64,000 nt of DNA from Mantamonas sphyraenae STR306 (taxonomy: Eukaryota > Protista > CRuMs). Under the pieces are notes generated by a model. The model searched no databases and had not been told where the DNA came from. It saw nothing but the letters and a program-made list of their open reading frames with translations. This document shows positions 21,633 to 28,125 of the stretch, one piece after another. The translations under genes and the position numbers were made by a program. The stretch spans positions 372,001 through 436,000 of the forward strand of contig JAPMXV010000042.1 in NCBI GenBank assembly GCA_026936335.1, written 5' to 3'. The stretch's first letter is position 1, and every line of letters starts with the position of its first letter.

Positions 21633-21808
21633 AGACCGCCCAGAAAATCACAAGCCATGATTGTTTCCATCACTGCCTTTTTGGTTTCATCCGACTGATG
21701 GCCAGGGTTCATTGTCCCTCAACCGCCGCTTTCCCCGCTTTCATCCTTCGCCGTCAGCGATGCAGCAGTTTGCTCCTCTCACTCACACTCTCTTGTCAAT
21801 TGTTGACG

Positions 21809-23025
21809 TCAATCCTTTTCGCGCTCGTTGAGAAAGTTGATGTAGTCCTCGTAAACAAGCGGCGTCTGTTCCTCGTTGATTGCTTGGCCTCGGAATCGGC
21901 CGTCCGCTACGTACAGGATCCGGTCGGCGTAACATTCCAGATCTGGATTGTGCGTCACCATGACACAGGTTGTGCCGTGTTCCCGATTGATATCCAGAAT
22001 GAGGTTCATGACATCCACGGTGTTTTTCGTGTCCAGATCGCCGGTGGGCTCATCCAGCAACAGCAGCTCCGGCTCGTTGGCCAGGGCACGCGCAATTGTC
22101 ACGCGCTGCTGTTCACCCCCCGACATTTCCGAAGGAAGGTGGTTGACTCGATCGCGCAGACCGACCACTGTGAGAGTGTGTGTCAGCGTGTGTCAGCGTG
22201 TGTCAGTGTACCAGCGATACCCGACCTGCTTTCTCCCGCGGCTGCTCGCTACGTACATCCAAGCAGGCCCAGAGCTCGCTTGCGGCGTTCCTCCTCGTTG
22301 AGTTTGCCCAGGATGATCATGGGCAGCTCCACGTTTTCGAATGCGCTCATTGTGGCGAGCAGGTTGAATGTCTGGAACACGAAGCCGATCTTCGACAGCC
22401 GCAGGTGTGACAGGAAGTTGTCCTCGCTCTCCGGACCGATGGTCTCCCCCAAGATTTCTGCAAACACGCACGTGGGTGTCAGCGACGACCAAGTGCGGGG
22501 GTAGAGGGGGGGTGCCAGGGGTGTGCAAAGCCGAAAGTGCCCGGCGCCTCGTACCAATCGTTCCCTTGGAACACAGGTCGATAGTGCCCAGCATGTTCAG
22601 CAGGGTCGTTTTCCCTCCTCCGCTGGGGCCCAGAATGGCTACAAACTCTCCCCTGTATGTGCACTGTGTTAGCGCCCCGTGTCTGCGTGTCTGTGTGTCT
22701 GGGTGTTCCGTTTTCCCACTGCCTCGCCTCACCTTCGAATCGGAAAGAACTCCCCGTCCTCGTTCAGGTTGATCTCCTTTAGCGCCACAACCGCCTCCTC
22801 GCGGCCCTCAATGTTGTACTCTGCGCATTGGTTGTCCGTCCAACAGGCTCGTGTTAGTGGTTGTGCCCCACGAACCCAGCCGGAGCGCGATGTTCCACCA
22901 CGCACTCCCCAAGCTTCCCTACCCTTCTGTACGCCGTCCACCACCACCACAGGCTCTCCAAACATCTTGGAGCGCTCCTCCATGACCCCAGGATATGCCA
23001 CCTTGTGCACCGACGAAGAGGACAT
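21809..23025 (-). CDS. Stand-alone ABC ATPase of LolD/MacB/FtsE type (protist 'ABCH'-like), no membrane domain
   Basis: Exons 23025-22923, 22820-22733, 22652-22555, 22457-22257, 22167-21809. GPSGGGKTT, IGFVFQTFNLL, ENVELP, MSGGEQQRVTIARAL, LLLLDEPTGDLD, VTHN. Confidence 0.92.
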
Positions 23026-23367
23026 CGCGGAATTTCTGCCTGCCACTGCGCCGCCAAACAAAAAAGTCCACGTATGTGTGCACATCCCACCCCACACCCC
23101 ACGCCCCACACCCCCACACAGCGTCCATGTACCATCCCTGCACGGAAACAGAGCTCCAGTGCTGTGATCAGGATTTCGCGCGGCACAGCGGCTGGCCGGC
23201 GTCCGATTTCCAGCCTTCTGGTGCTGTCGATTTCGTCGAAACGGGTCGCGCCGCTGCCGCGCGTAACACGCCAAACAGGAATGTAGGGACGCGCATAATC
23301 AGTGGAAACGACTGACACTGCAATTGGCCACTCGTGTGTGTTGTGTTTGTGTCCCCACCACAGTGGA

Positions 23368-25327
23368 ATGAGTCGGTTTAAGGCAAAGGAGAGTTCGAAA
23401 GAAGGCTCACGCCCAAACACCAACAAAATGGTGCTCGCCGACTCGATGGACAGCGACGACGTGTCGGAAGAGGGTGCAAGCGACGACGACGGCGGCGCCG
23501 GCGGGTACGTGGGTGACGGTGGCGACGCATGGGAGCGACTGGGTTGGCTGCAAGCGGAAGGGCCGCGTGCACTGGACAGGCTGTACGAGAGGCAAAACAC
23601 ATGCCTGCAGCAATTGTTCCCATCCCAAGAGACATGTCGCGACGCCAACGACGATCCCTTGGACAGGGAAGCCCTGTACGAGGAGCTGGAGCAGCTGGAG
23701 AGCGAGCAGATCGAAACTCAAGACACTGTTCTGGCACTCATGGATTCCATCCCTGAGCTGCTTGGCTCGGCCATCTGGGGGGTGCAGGACATGGAGTTTC
23801 TGCGCCAAGTGCAGAGTCAAGCACAGGCACAGCTCGCACAGCTGACCCTGCTCCAACGCGAGTTACAACTGCACAAGTCCCTCGAGGACGCCGACAACAA
23901 CAACAACAACAACAACAACAATATGAACAACACCAAGGGTAAAGGCAGGAAGAAAAGGCAGTTGGCAGACGATGTCCTGCTCGTGGAGCTTGCGGTGATT
24001 GAACAGCCGCTGCCCAGCGCCCTCCAGCTTAACGCTCCCTCACACAGGATTCACGAGCCCAAAGGTTCGCTGTCCACGGGCTCGCTGTCCACGGAAAGCA
24101 GCGACAGCGATGTGTACGAGGAGGAGTTGGACGACGAGGTGGATGCACAGTGCGATGCGGACGGAAACCCGTTTGGTTGGCTGGACGACAACTCGGCTGC
24201 CAGTTGGGACGACTACGTGGTGCAGTTGCTCGCCTCGCCTCTTTGTCCATACTCGGTAATCGGCAAGGTGCATGCGTTCCTTGTCTGCGAACAGAGCGAG
24301 GAGGACGCAGATGGCAACTTGGAAACCTTTTACGTGGAATCGGAGCCCATAGCCCACGCGGTGTTGGATGAACACACAGGCATGGCCGTGTTCCCTCGGT
24401 TGTATGAGCGTGTGCAAAGGCAAGGTTTGCGCGCTCTGTCCAGCGTCACCGATGCATGGCCCGAGTACGCCTACGTGGGTTTCTCGGTGGAAGTCGAGGT
24501 CGCCGGAGCGGGAGTGTTTCGCGTGTGCACCTCCCTGGAGAGTGCCTACCCGTGCAGGTTGTACGGAAGCAACGAAGAATGGTTGGAGGCTGCGGCCGAA
24601 ATGCTCTGGATGGACTGCGTGGACTATCACATCGACCAGGAGGAGGTCTCATGGAACCAGTTGGCCAATGTGCTGCAGTTGCACTTTGTGAACAGCACAA
24701 TGCAGGACCCCATGGAGCCCGAGCGGCCACTTGCACGCTCGGACATTGAGTATCTGCGCTCCAAGTTTCTGCCCGAAAGCGAGCAGCGACAGGTGATCAG
24801 TCAGGCTGTGTTCTTTGGTCCGCAGCTCCCTGCCAGTCTGTCCCCGCACGGAGCCTCGGGCAGCAGCAACACAGGCGCAGGTGCGGCGATGGACACGCAA
24901 GGCCTATGGCCGTGGTTTGGTCAGATTGTGCAGATGCTGCGCAGCCGACCGGATGTGCACGCGCTGTGGTGCAAGGGTGCCTTGTTTGGCCTCGTGTCGC
25001 GCAAGGACGCGATGAACGCTCTGTGTAGCGACAGCATGGAGGTGCCGCAGGCCGGCCGCTTCCTCATCCGTTTTTCTGAACGGAATCCTGGCAGCCTTGT
25101 CGTTGTGTATCTGGACGGCGACGACCAGTCGGACGGGCTGCAAGTGAAAAACTTCTTGGTTTCCAACGACGCCGATCTGCACGAGCTGATGGCGCGCTAC
25201 CCTGAATTTGGCCAGGTGCTTGTTGTGGATCCGAACGGCGACAACGACGCCATGCAACTCGTCGACAAGGAGCTCATGTTTGCACAGGACGACACACACG
25301 AACTGCTGGCAGCAGACTCGGCGTCTT

Positions 25328-25366
<39 letters not shown>

Positions 25367-27363
25367 TTGGTGCCAAGTACAATCGTGTGACGCTGGAATA
25401 CGCCGATCTGGAGTTTGACGATCAGGAGGACGGCGACGGCGACGGCGCGGTGCGTTTGGCAAGACTGGATGAGGAATTGGTGATGGTACGCAGCGTGGAG
25501 CTCAAAACACGCATGGGCAAGCGACTGCAGCGTCAGCTGCGCGACGAGTCACGGCTGCTTTGCAGTGCGGCCCACGGCAACGTCGTGCGCATGTACGGCT
25601 ACGCCATGCAGGAGAATGACAAGGGCGACGGGGCACGGGTGCACCTTGTACACGCGTACGAGGAAGACATGCAATCGTTGCCGTCGCTGATGGACGCGGC
25701 TGTGGACGAGGAGGACGGGGGTGCACTGGACATGGTGCAGGTGCTGCGCATTGCCCATGGCATTGCGTGTGGCATGCAGCATTTGGTGGAGACATGTGGC
25801 AAGGTGCACCACGGCGATCTGACCGCAGACAGTGTGCTTGTGGACAGGCGCGATGCTTCGCATGTAAAGATCTGCGAGTACGGCATGGCGAGGCCCACGT
25901 GCCTGCGCTACCGCGCGCCCGAGGTGATGCGTGGCGACGGCCCAGGCGACAAGACAGATGTGTACTCGTTTGGCCTGTTGCTGGCGGAGATGATCAACAT
26001 GGAAACGGTGTTTGCAGAGATGGAGGACGACCTGGAGGCAGCCAACGCTGCCACATACGACGGCCTTCGTCCACAGCTGGACAGCACGCGCTGCCCCGTG
26101 CTCCTCGAGTCCATCCTGCAGTCGTGTTGGAGCGACGACGCCTCGCAACGCCCGTCATTTGGCCAGTTGGTGCGTTATCTGCACCGGCTGCTACGCCAGG
26201 CGGTGGTGGGTGCGGGCGGTGTGGACGCGGACAAGGAGTTGCGTCTGGCCGAGGACAGGCTGCATGACGCCGAACAGACGCGCCGGCGCGCTCAGCTCAG
26301 TCTCCGGTATGCAGAGAACGAGAGGGAGGCCTTTGGGCGCATGAGCAAGCAGGCCGAGGAGGATGTGGACGCCTACGGTGCGTGGACGGGGCAGTTGGAA
26401 CACAATCTGGAGGCGTTTGTTGCGCCGTATCTCATCGACATCGACACAGTGCGCAAACTGACGCTTGTGGAGGAGGACGAAGTGGAGCGCGTGTACACGG
26501 GCGTGTGGAAGGGCACACCCGTGCGCGTGAAGGAGCTGTGCAGCATCGCCGCACACAACGACGACGATGCACTCGTGCACACGTTTGAAATGGAGGTGTC
26601 GCGCATGAGTAAGCTTCGTCATGACAACTTGACACTGTTTCTGGGCGCTTGCATCGACGAGTCAGCACACAGGCTGTGTCTGGTTACGGAACAGCTGCGT
26701 GGATACGTCAATCTGGAGACGTTGCTCGGTAGCAGCGAGCCTGCACAGCGTCGTATGGTGCGCCAACAAAGCGTGGCCATTGTACGTGGAGTCGTGCGCG
26801 CCCTGCGTCACATGCACCTCAGCAAGCCGGCCTTTGTGTGTGGCAGTGTCACGGCGCGACAGGTCTGGCTTCGTCTGGACGACTCGCAGACACGTGTCCT
26901 TGCCGTCAAGGTGGACCCCTTTGTGGGCCAACACATCTTGCTGGAGCACGGACGCATGGCTCAGGACGCACACGCCACCGAGAGTGTCCTCGAACTTGCC
27001 GAACCGGGCTCCCTGGCGCCCGAACTCCTGGAAGCCATGGTGCTGCAACGCGATGGCGATGAAGGCGACCTGGATGTGTGGCGCAGGCCGTTGGACCGTG
27101 CATCTGACGTCTGGAGTGTGGCCATGCTCATTTGGCGCATGCTGGCTGGAGGCGAGGACATCCTGCAGCCCCACAGCGTCGACCAGCACGTAGAGTGGAT
27201 CCTCCACGACGGTTGGCGTCCACAGGTGCCCCAACACGAGTCCCAACAGTTGGATGACTTGCTGCACGCCTGCTGGGCCGACCGTGCCGACGAACGACCT
27301 ACTGTCGACCAGCTCGCCACGAAACTGCGTACCCTGCGGCTGCCCAATGAATCGAAATCCTGA
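23368..27363 (+). CDS. STAT-like protein (Dictyostelium-type coiled coil, DBD, linker, SH2) fused to two tandem kinase-like (pseudokinase) domains
   Basis: Single intronless ORF; first ATG 23368. STAT core: LAVIEQPLP, WNQLANVLQLHF..TMQDP..PERPL...DIEYL, WPWFGQ, LWCKG, GRFLIRFSERNPG. Two TKL-like folds: HGNVVRMYG/RYRAPE/DVYSFG/CWSDDASQRPSF and RHDNLTLFLGAC/LAPE/DVWS/CWADRADERPT. Confidence 0.88.
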
Positions 27364-27429
27364 GAAAGTGAAATGCCGTGATTGATTGTTGTTGTTGTGT
27401 GTGTATGTATGTGCGTGTGTGTGTGCTCT

Positions 27430-28125
27430 TCAGTAGCCCCAGACGTCGCCATCGCCCTGGCTCGAGTGGTACACCCTGATCCAGGCCAGCACAGTTCCGT
27501 ACACAACCAGTCCGCCAGCCAAACCGAGCACAAAGGCAAGTGCACCAATGGCCTGGGCGTGCAGCATGACCAGCGGCAATCCAAACCCAGAAACCACAAG
27601 CGAGCCCGTGAGAAACTCGCCCACATGGCCAAAGTCCCGCTTGCCTGCACCGCCCCCAAACCCGTCCTCCGTGGGGGCAGGGCAGAACACGTTGGGCAAC
27701 GGTGCCACCAAGTATGTAAACACTGCGTATGGGTTTGTCGACAAGACGGCGGGGGACCATGGGAAGAGCCGTGGAATGGCGTGCCACCGAGGGAACGACG
27801 GGAAGTGTGTGTGAGTCGTTCGCGCCATGGGAAAACTGCCCAGCACCACCCTGCGTCACTCACCAATCATTATAGGCAGCCAGTTGTCGTGCAGGACACA
27901 CGCCAAGATGTTGAGCACCAGACCCAGGCACAGCAACAGGCTGAACCCGAGAATGCTGTTGTTGGGTACCGGCAACACACAATTGTCATTGTCAGTTCTC
28001 TCTCCCCCACCTTTGTGCCCACAGCTCGATTCACGCCTTCAAAGGCTGCCCCTCCCTCAGCCCTCCTCTCCATCTTCACTGTGTGGTACATACGTCTTTG
28101 GATCGCGCGCGTTGAGTTGAACCAT
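27430..28125 (-). CDS. VPS55: Vacuolar protein sorting 55 / OB-RGRP family membrane protein
   Basis: Exons 28125-28094, 27955-27864, 27722-27430. GLVLNILACVLHDNWLP, YLVAPLPN, FLTG.LVVSGFGLPLVMLHA.AI. Confidence 0.92.

Follow-up and report, generated by a model that had tools for sequence, protein, structure and literature searches.

Does a single gene of the gliding flagellate Mantamonas sphyraenae join a STAT to a pair of kinase domains of its own, and what could such a protein do? Here we have analysed a window of 64,000 nucleotides from the M. sphyraenae STR306 assembly (GCA_026936335.1, contig JAPMXV010000042.1, positions 372,001 to 436,000 of the forward strand), in which an initial annotation made from the sequence had picked out one open reading frame (ORF) as a STAT transcription-factor core fused to two tandem degenerate kinase domains, a one-gene JAK-STAT-like module. 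We find that this is a genuine, expressed, single-exon fusion gene of M. sphyraenae, and that its product is a STAT family member by its fold and its four domains, departing from the family in its C-terminal half, where two kinase-like domains (KD1 and KD2) follow the SH2. The reading that we favour, at a probability of about one half, is that of a non-catalytic and probably non-DNA-binding phosphotyrosine signalling scaffold, a role that the initial annotation had put forward as its alternative. What is new is a conserved domain architecture made of known domains.

Mantamonas is a member of CRuMs, a supergroup that splits off at the base of Amorphea. According to the genome paper (PMC10492846), the diploid M. 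sphyraenae genome was assembled with FALCON from PacBio reads into 25.06 Mb in 78 primary contigs with a GC content of 59.19%. The genome examined here holds 25,061,354 bases, and the GC fraction of the window is about 0.59.

The fusion gene and its transcript

The frame runs from stop to stop over 23302-27363 of the plus strand and encodes, from its first ATG at 23368, a protein of 1331 residues, intronless and with zero internal stops or frameshifts, which agrees with the single uninterrupted frame of about 1330 residues first described. The order of domains given at that time is correct: a coiled coil, then the Ig-like domain, the linker and the SH2, and, after a poly-Ser stretch, two kinase-like domains with a helix between them. 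The positions of the SH2 Arg codon, the AGC repeat and the domain bounds are accurate as well (Table 1). A look-up of the exact window protein found no record.

That the two halves belong together is best seen in a second species. The EukProt Trinity transcript P0014 of Mantamonas plastica (1521 residues) is collinear with the window protein from the coiled coil to the last helix of KD2 (E = 0, 38% identity over 1160 columns), and it has the same Pfam pattern, save for the SH2, which Pfam does not detect in P0014. Its low-complexity linkers differ from those of M. sphyraenae. As P0014 comes from an independent transcriptome, the fusion is real and at least as old as the genus.

Four public sequencing runs of one study contain the stretch. 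Two of them (X1 and X2) retain the introns of a neighbouring minus-strand gene and thus behave as DNA, whereas a third (X3) behaves as RNA, skipping four introns of that gene (22167/22257, 22457/22555, 22651/22732 and 22820/22923). Contigs of the RNA-like run cover the ORF as 23364-25318, 25375-25853, 25824-25944 (an allelic bubble) and 25915-27468, without joints and at depths of 110.7, 102.4, ~116 and 128.5, next to 6.7 in the upstream spacer and 231-284 over the neighbouring genes. Contig depth is a crude measure of transcript continuity, and the even RNA-like depth on either side of the poly-Ser tract is consistent with one transcript, though no proof of it.

An artefact, in which a STAT gene and a neighbouring tandem kinase gene had been joined by misassembly or by a collapsed AGC repeat, or were transcribed separately, is most improbable. 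In its favour, no short-read contig from any of the four runs crosses the poly-Ser region at 25319-25374, so that for one continuous transcript in M. sphyraenae we rely on the orthologue, on the frame being open and on the evenness of depth. However, the frame stays open through the AGC repeat, and the first Met downstream of the poly-Ser sits within beta3 of KD1, so that KD1 could not be translated whole by itself; DNA and RNA-like depth are equal on both sides of the repeat; the PacBio reads of the assembly easily span 42 bases; and M. plastica independently yields a single ORF with the same domain order and other linkers. The fusion claim of the initial annotation, with no chimeric assembly at the AGC repeat, is thus upheld by the long-read assembly, the RNA-like coverage and the collinear orthologue.

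Variation within the gene bears on its maintenance. A segment of 121 bases (25824-25944) exists in two contig versions at roughly equal depth in all three well-covered runs, differing at 25854, 25884, 25890 and 25914; all four differences are synonymous, and the pair fits two alleles of a diploid. Across the public runs, 7/10 single-base differences within the ORF are synonymous; with ~27% of changes synonymous at random, a result of at least 7/10 has, by a rough estimate, a probability below 1%. Between the two species, KD1, the inter-kinase helix and KD2 are about as well conserved as the STAT coiled coil (39-42% identity; Table 1), with 48-53% for the Ig-like domain, linker and SH2 and 7-30% for the spacers, so the kinase-like domains are not decaying. 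Together, the interspecies identities and the synonymous differences suggest an ORF under purifying selection.

The STAT core and its DNA-contact surface

The match of the N-terminal half to STAT profiles, on which the initial annotation depended, is borne out: EF-hand_12 and SH2 score above their Pfam cut-offs, and Dictyostelium STATa (1uur) is the top match by both sequence and fold. EF-hand_12, the linker of Dictyostelium STATs, covers residues 404-471 (E = 1.7e-14, 54.5 bits against a cut-off of 25) and is the sole match of this family in the genome, and SH2 covers residues 540-609 (24.3 bits against 21). STAT_linker falls slightly below its cut-off (25.1 bits against 27). Dict-STAT-coil is sub-threshold (E = 0.13), so that the coiled coil is weak by sequence and is seen in the structural model and fold match. 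Pfam STATa_Ig does not detect the Ig-like domain of the window protein, probably because an acidic insert interrupts it. The domain starts LVELAVIEQPLP (family motif QPFP), then carries the insert, 54 residues long here and about 145 in M. plastica, and resumes at WDDYVVQLL; its QPxP start and core strands align with those of 43 relatives. In a sequence search of solved structures with the N-terminal half, 1uur came first (E = 4.7e-23) and human STAT2 and STAT1 were marginal (E = 0.015 to 0.47).

For modelling, residues 55-654 were aligned with P0014, two cores from a Diphylleia rotans protein (see below) and the 43 other relatives, among which the three named rows (Vermistella, Thecamoeba and Pelomyxa) are all Amoebozoa. 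The resulting AlphaFold2 model is confident (predicted local distance difference test, pLDDT, 80.8; predicted template modelling score 0.81), with disorder limited to the N-terminus, the poly-Asn/basic stretch, the acidic insert and one loop. Its long helices span model residues 5-29, 43-80 and 85-127, the last two at a pLDDT of about 85-90, and its Ig-like beta-sandwich lies above 90. Foldseek places 1uur first (E = 3e-25, TM-score 0.74 by target, 584 columns, all four domains), and all 43 matches at E <= 0.001 are STATs, with STATa followed by STAT6, 5, 2, 1 and 3. The model that the initial annotation had proposed as a check is thus that of a STAT core.

The SH2 retains both phosphotyrosine-binding arginines, Arg545 in GLVSR as well as the Arg568 of FLIRFSERNPG that had been called intact at the outset, and its binding pocket is intact in these residues. 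Beyond it lie two candidate phosphotyrosine sites, Y671 and Y678, located 39-46 residues past the SH2 and followed by about 650 further residues. At the places matching GAKY and LEYAD, the M. plastica tail has a canonical GY motif (GVTGYVHRG) and then LQYVD.

The Ig-like domain, the 'DNA-binding' domain of STATs, departs from its relatives in charge. Counted over those columns that at least 60% of the aligned rows fill, so that inserts drop out, it holds 5 Lys and Arg residues in M. sphyraenae and 3 in M. plastica against a mean of 13.5 in the 43 relatives, and 23 and 22 Asp and Glu residues against a mean of 11.5. Net charge is accordingly -18 and -19, where the relatives stand at +2.0 (standard deviation 2.7, range -4 to +8). 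The coiled coil is acidic as well (-13 and -16 against -2.3). The SH2 is near normal (0 in M. sphyraenae and -1 in M. plastica against +3.4), which argues that the acidity of the Ig-like domain is no proteome-wide bias. The Diphylleia Ig-like domains have ordinary net charges of 0 and +5.

Particular positions have changed too. Within the Ig-like domain and linker, 10/11 columns that are Lys or Arg in at least 60% of relatives are non-basic in M. sphyraenae, the one retained being the structural Arg of PxRPLS, and the near-invariant TNExQW has become GSNEEW (M. sphyraenae) or TTDEEW (M. plastica). In the STAT1-DNA and STAT3-DNA structures, DNA is contacted by this motif's Asn and Gln and by residues at several of the basic columns. 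The basic and Asn/Gln residues that make up the DNA-contact feature of the family are therefore largely gone, transcription-factor activity is doubtful, and the Ig-like domain has probably lost DNA binding. The 'STAT transcription-factor core' of the initial annotation stands as a fold, matched to 1uur, while its second half, activity as a transcription factor, is in doubt.

It is nonetheless possible, at clearly lesser odds than the scaffold, that the protein is still a phosphotyrosine-activated STAT transcription factor. A separate active TKL kinase would phosphorylate the tail, an SH2-phosphotyrosine dimer would enter the nucleus, and the pseudokinases would serve as a docking module, like JH2 on a substrate; DNA would be bound atypically or through a partner, for example an unfused STAT-like protein. 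All four STAT domains are predicted confidently and match 1uur and metazoan STATs, the SH2 pocket is intact, and the tail carries tyrosines, in M. plastica within the canonical GY motif. Furthermore, M. sphyraenae has a basic cluster, KGKGRKKRQ, that resembles a nuclear localisation signal, its genome holds two further STAT-like genes as possible partners, and the acidic stretches could serve as activation domains. Against this stand the Ig-like domain itself, with three to five basic residues and a net charge far outside the range of the relatives, the loss of 10/11 basic columns, the replacement of the TNExQW Asn and Gln in both species, and the absence of the basic cluster from M. plastica.

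The kinase-like domains and the case for a scaffold

Pfam PK_Tyr_Ser-Thr matches two stretches of the C-terminal half, scoring singly 97.9 bits for KD1 and 76.3 bits for KD2 against a cut-off of 23.1, and outscores Pkinase for both; by best similarity, KD1 and KD2 belong to the TKL group. To compare motifs, we aligned both domains, from both species, with a Raf-like kinase from a plant, a kinase from a jellyfish and active TKL kinases encoded in the M. sphyraenae genome. The Gly-rich loop is absent from KD1 and KD2 in either species, and the alphaC Glu and APE are kept in both domains. In KD1, the beta3 Lys is Arg in both species (LVMVRSV in M. sphyraenae, LVIVRMI in M. plastica), HRD reads HGD in both, the catalytic-loop Asn is Ser in M. 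sphyraenae and Asn in M. plastica, and DFG reads EYG and DYG, respectively; its activation segment is very short, about a dozen residues. KD2 keeps the beta3 Lys (VRVKEL and VTVKEL), has CGS in M. sphyraenae and AGV in M. plastica in place of HRD, with no Asp, has Gln and Asn, respectively, at the catalytic-loop Asn, and reads DPF for DFG in both. The set of motifs that marks an active kinase (Gly-rich loop, beta3 Lys, HRD Asp, Asn and DFG Asp) is complete in neither domain. KD1 and KD2 are thus predicted pseudokinases in both Mantamonas species, KD1 of M. plastica being the least degenerate, and the two degenerate kinase domains of the initial annotation are confirmed by alignment in two species.

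Among solved chains, those nearest to KD1 by sequence are ZAK/MLT, CTR1, TAK1 and Roco4, followed by Eph (53 matches listed), and those nearest to KD2 are KSR2/KSR1, CTR1, ILK and MLKL, mostly known pseudokinase scaffolds (60 matches listed). No JAK chain is among the matches listed for either domain, and a resemblance of KD2 to JAK JH2 has no support by sequence, its top 60 being free of JAKs. Over 85 C-lobe residues, KD1 and KD2 are about 31% identical, and the M. sphyraenae genome has no close paralogue of either; a recent tandem duplication is rejected on both observations. On the same contig outside the window, a 1776-residue open frame (C42:88246-91767) has three separate kinase-domain matches, so that the STAT fusion is not alone in this genome in having several kinase domains.

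Might some catalysis survive? It is quite unlikely that, through residual non-canonical activity, the protein phosphorylates its own tail tyrosines or those of a partner copy and so forms a self-contained kinase-STAT module. The HGD, Asn, DYG and APE of M. plastica KD1 and the beta3 Lys and alphaC Glu of KD2 in both species would allow for it; low activity is on record for some proteins that are called pseudokinases, JAK2 JH2 among them (cited in PMC4196871); and the kinase of a Diphylleia STAT fusion has HGD, Asn and DFG intact. But both domains lack a Gly-rich loop in either species, KD1 has the beta3 Arg in both and, in M. sphyraenae, EYG and an Asn-to-Ser change, and KD2 combines the missing catalytic-loop Asp with DPF in both and has the non-catalytic scaffolds KSR, ILK and MLKL as its nearest solved relatives. 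The probability left over by the scaffold, transcription-factor, catalytic and artefact readings falls to an explanation outside these four.

In the scaffold that we favour, a STAT-fold core has its usual short C-terminal tail replaced by two TKL pseudokinases and a conserved helix, and the fusion protein would no longer act as a DNA-binding transcription factor, nor as a kinase. Its SH2 may dock on a phosphotyrosine of an activated TKL kinase, or on the Y671/Y678 tail of a second copy, and the tandem pseudokinase module, like KSR, ILK, JAK JH2 or the Pyk3 pseudokinase, may bind an active TKL kinase or tune it allosterically. The gene could then be seen as a 'Rosetta-stone' fusion that records an old link between STATs and TKL (pseudo)kinases, the partners being separate in Amoebozoa. 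As a signalling protein it would be unusual in that its 'active' parts, the two kinase active sites and the DNA-contact surface, all seem disabled while the folds and the phosphotyrosine pocket stay under selection, which is rare and would make it a natural test of the scaffold roles of pseudokinases and of a 'pseudo-STAT'.

Several observations weigh against the scaffold. KD1 of M. plastica, with its HGD, catalytic-loop Asn and DYG, may have weak or unusual activity, and KD2, with its beta3 Lys and alphaC Glu, may bind nucleotide. The case for lost DNA binding is built on composition, charge and motif, and the Ig-like domain is conserved between the Mantamonas species (48% identity), which argues that it does something. 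The canonical GY tail of M. plastica fits ordinary STAT-type activation and dimerisation. Finally, an AlphaFold2 model of the C-terminal half (spacer, KD1, helix and KD2), built on a two-row alignment, reached a pLDDT of 41 and gave no usable structure, and the unbridged poly-Ser tract counts here as well.

Table 1. Features of the fusion gene by position in the 64,000-nucleotide window.
Feature	Position	Strand	Residues	Evidence and remarks	Identity to M. plastica
Whole coding sequence	23368..27363	+	1331 plus stop	intronless; RNA-like contigs without joints	
N-terminal STAT-type coiled coil	23542..23877	+	59-170	AlphaFold2 helices, Foldseek against 1uur; unusually acidic	39%
Poly-Asn run and basic cluster KGKGRKKRQ	23896..23961	+	177-198	resembles a nuclear localisation signal; missing from M. 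plastica	
Ig-like STAT 'DNA-binding' domain	23968..24567	+	201-400	start LVELAVIEQPLP; alignment, AlphaFold2 beta-sandwich	
Acidic insert inside Ig-like domain	24034..24195	+	223-276	lineage-specific; splits the domain	
EF-hand-type STAT linker	24568..24777	+	401-470	Pfam EF-hand_12	53%
STAT-type SH2	24892..25263	+	509-632	Pfam SH2, alignment to 1uur	52%
Arg545 codon of SH2 (alphaA2)	25000-25002	+	545	in GLVSR	
Arg568 codon of SH2 (betaB5)	25069-25071	+	568	CGT; in FLIRFSERNPG	
Poly-Ser spacer, 14-Ser tract	25324..25365	+		pure AGC run 25333-25362	
Tyr-bearing tail, SH2 to KD1	25372..25416	+		candidate phosphotyrosine sites Y671, Y678	
Y671 (GAKY)	25378-25380	+	671	candidate phosphotyrosine	
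Y678 (LEYAD)	25399-25401	+	678	candidate phosphotyrosine	
Kinase-like domain 1 (KD1)	25483..26202	+	706-945	TKL-type, predicted pseudokinase	42%
Inter-kinase long helix/coiled coil	26203..26421	+	946-1018	one long helix in a low-confidence AlphaFold2 model	41%
Kinase-like domain 2 (KD2)	26422..27342	+	1019-1325	TKL-type, predicted pseudokinase	39%

Around the 5' end of the gene, an RNA-like contig starts at 23364, four bases before the ATG and after Illumina adapter sequence, with depth near zero upstream; this suggests a very short 5' untranslated region or a sharply defined transcript start, although contigs cannot prove a transcript end. The upstream minus-strand gene (21800-23025) has four short GT..AG introns of 89, 97, 80 and 102 nt, confirmed by RNA-like contigs, and over this span the DNA-like runs show small indels and single-nucleotide differences, mostly in or beside the intron spans.

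Relatives, possible partners and known systems

How widely is the architecture shared? An exhaustive HMMER search with the STAT core over 1.84 billion representative proteins returned 328 relatives, and the results given here concern the best 150 of the 328. P0014 is the closest relative of the window protein, a long extension after the SH2 is found in two proteins, P0014 and P0063 of Diphylleia rotans, and among these 150 no like architecture occurs outside CRuMs protists. Whether it had already been catalogued, a point raised with the initial annotation, can be answered for these relatives, where CRuMs alone have it, and for the literature, in which we found no description of it. A word-index protein search with the full-length query returned kinase-domain matches only (a papaya PB1-kinase and a jellyfish SH2-kinase) and not the same architecture, the same type of search with the Diphylleia core returned only itself, the STAT-core region of the window protein scored against long proteins matched none but missed P0014 too and is thus uninformative, and a metagenome scan with the Mantamonas alignment gave 148 pattern matches, 0 of them confirmed. 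A Logan fragment near the Diphylleia cores (P0016) comes from a contig that ends just past a partial SH2 and is uninformative on architecture.

The Diphylleia protein P0063 (EukProt EP00002, 1467 residues, three Trinity isoforms), also from CRuMs, resembles the window protein in joining a Dictyostelium-type STAT core to a TKL-like kinase, which comes directly after the SH2 and a GY tail motif: STATa_Ig at 228-338, EF-hand_12 at 343-432 and SH2 at 440-530 are followed by a GYV tail motif and a kinase at about 659-875. It differs in having one kinase domain rather than two, with HGD, catalytic-loop Asn, DFG and APE intact; in carrying, after the kinase, a second complete STAT core (Ig-like, EF-hand and SH2) that finishes with PPGYVV near the C-terminus; and in the ordinary charge of its Ig-like domains. 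The N-lobe of its kinase is atypical, with a Pfam match that begins at profile position 40 and a non-canonical Gly-rich loop and beta3 Lys. Of the two fusions, P0063 comes closer to being a true 'kinase plus STAT in one protein'.

Do the two fusions have one origin? Queried at E <= 1e-10, the P0063 kinase matches 54 other M. sphyraenae kinase domains, with KD1 and KD2 absent, and its orthology with KD1 is accordingly unsupported. A quick maximum-likelihood tree of STAT cores, unrooted, with modest support and a warning for long branches, pairs the two Diphylleia cores together and sets the Mantamonas pair on its own long stem, both pairs lying outside a 42-row group that holds the three named amoebozoan sequences. 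The kinase search and this tree thus leave a shared origin of the Diphylleia and Mantamonas fusions unsupported. We consider it unlikely that the STAT-kinase fusion is ancestral to CRuMs or older and that the first STATs carried their own TKL kinase. If this were so, that kinase would survive in Diphylleia in partly competent form and in Mantamonas in a form both fossilised and duplicated, the separate STATs and TKL kinases or JAKs of Amoebozoa and animals would have arisen by fission, and in the Mantamonas and Diphylleia proteins we would have living relics from the time when kinase-STAT signalling began.

Beyond the fusion gene, the M. sphyraenae genome has at least 13 SH2 matches, 17 PTP-family matches (about four genes strong) and at least 54 kinase-domain matches to a TKL-type kinase query, so that readers, erasers and writers of phosphotyrosine are all available. 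The window gene as the sole STAT of the genome was rejected, a profile search having found two divergent STAT-like genes without kinase domains. One, on contig 25 at 70985-71590 of the minus strand, matches part of the Ig-like domain, linker and SH2 (hhalign probability 99.3%), and the other, on contig 49 at 146720-147085 of the plus strand, matches linker and SH2 (98.9%). Their loci (C25:69485-73090 and C49:145220-148585) contain ORFs of 483 and 449 residues, both of which have Dictyostelium STATa as best solved match and are without the ATRQDP motif. These unfused proteins could be partners of the fusion protein or the actual DNA-binding STATs.

Other SH2 genes have combinations of their own. 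Three paralogues, at C49:467706-470960 (plus strand), C73:152430-155669 (minus strand) and C13:236940-240128 (minus strand), join a STAND NTPase (NACHT / NB-ARC / nSTAND1) to a Cbl_N2-type EF-hand and an SH2, which makes each an NLR-like NTPase whose sensor position is taken by a phosphotyrosine reader. A Cbl-like gene (C5:29679-32843) carries an SH2 of Cbl_N3 type and a RING finger, and at C12:50373-53561 a SAM domain precedes an Spt6-type SH2_2 module. With the STAT-kinase-STAT protein of Diphylleia and the SH2-bearing STAND NTPases, the Mantamonas fusion points to an unexplored and inventive phosphotyrosine toolkit in CRuMs.

In the usual view, STATs end shortly after the SH2 and a Tyr that is phosphorylated by a separate kinase, a JAK or, in Dictyostelium, Pyk2 and Pyk3, and reviews describe STATs as unfused proteins (PMC3670263, PMC4053784). 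The initial annotation knew of no description of such a fusion, and we likewise found none in the literature for a natural STAT-kinase or STAT-pseudokinase fusion of the Mantamonas or Diphylleia type, or for STATs in CRuMs, though papers and InterPro may still hold one; the M. sphyraenae genome paper makes no mention of kinases, and its seven word-start matches to 'STAT' include 'static' and 'statistics', with no STAT protein in the passages concerned (PMC10492846). As independent 'Rosetta-stone' evidence from a lineage at the base of Amorphea, a conserved fusion of STAT and TKL (pseudo)kinase suggests an old STAT-TKL partnership rather than one peculiar to Dictyostelium.

Compared with Dictyostelium-type STATs (Dd-STATa 1uur and those of Vermistella, Thecamoeba and Pelomyxa), the window protein has the same four-domain core in the same order, with a QPxP Ig-like start, an EF-hand_12 linker, the FLIRFSERNPG SH2 and no metazoan N-terminal domain. 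It differs from them in about 650 extra C-terminal residues with two pseudokinase domains, in the acidic insert of the Ig-like domain, in the loss of most conserved basic residues and of TNExQW, and in a tail whose canonical GY is not obvious in M. sphyraenae.

With metazoan JAKs it shares tandem kinase-like domains, at least one of them a pseudokinase, and a functional association with STAT. However, JAKs have a FERM domain, an active kinase that belongs to the tyrosine-kinase group, and another order relative to the SH2; Pfam gives no FERM match in the window protein, which lacks the JAK set of FERM, SH2-like, JH2 and active JH1 domains. A one-gene JAK-STAT-like module can therefore not be upheld, there being no active kinase, no FERM, two TKL-type domains and no JAK among the matches listed. 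The further claim that the gene bears on the origin of JAK-STAT signalling falls on the same lack of an active kinase and a FERM domain and on the TKL type of KD1 and KD2; on present evidence the Mantamonas fusion has no direct bearing on the origin of JAKs. By domain order, it is no SHK either: Dictyostelium SHKs place an active kinase N-terminal to a single SH2 and have no STAT core, whereas here the STAT core and SH2 come first and the pseudokinases follow. KSR1/2, ILK and MLKL, the nearest solved relatives of KD2, have likewise lost catalytic residues and kept the fold, and act by binding or allosteric regulation; their similarity to KD2 is weak (E = 1e-11) and confined to the N-lobe, and none of them is fused to a STAT core or SH2.

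The closest precedent for a scaffold that tunes a TKL kinase, and one that supports it by analogy, is the Pyk2/Pyk3-STATc system of Dictyostelium (PMC4196871). There, as experiments have established, Pyk2 and Pyk3, of the TKL group, phosphorylate STATc, the STATc SH2 docks on the autophosphorylated kinases, and the pseudokinase domain of Pyk3 represses its kinase domain, as JH2 does in JAKs (PMC4196871). Compared by description rather than by sequence, the two systems both pair a TKL kinase or pseudokinase with a Dictyostelium-type STAT, but in Dictyostelium kinase and STAT are separate and one kinase domain is active, whereas in Mantamonas they lie in the same polypeptide and neither kinase-like domain looks active.

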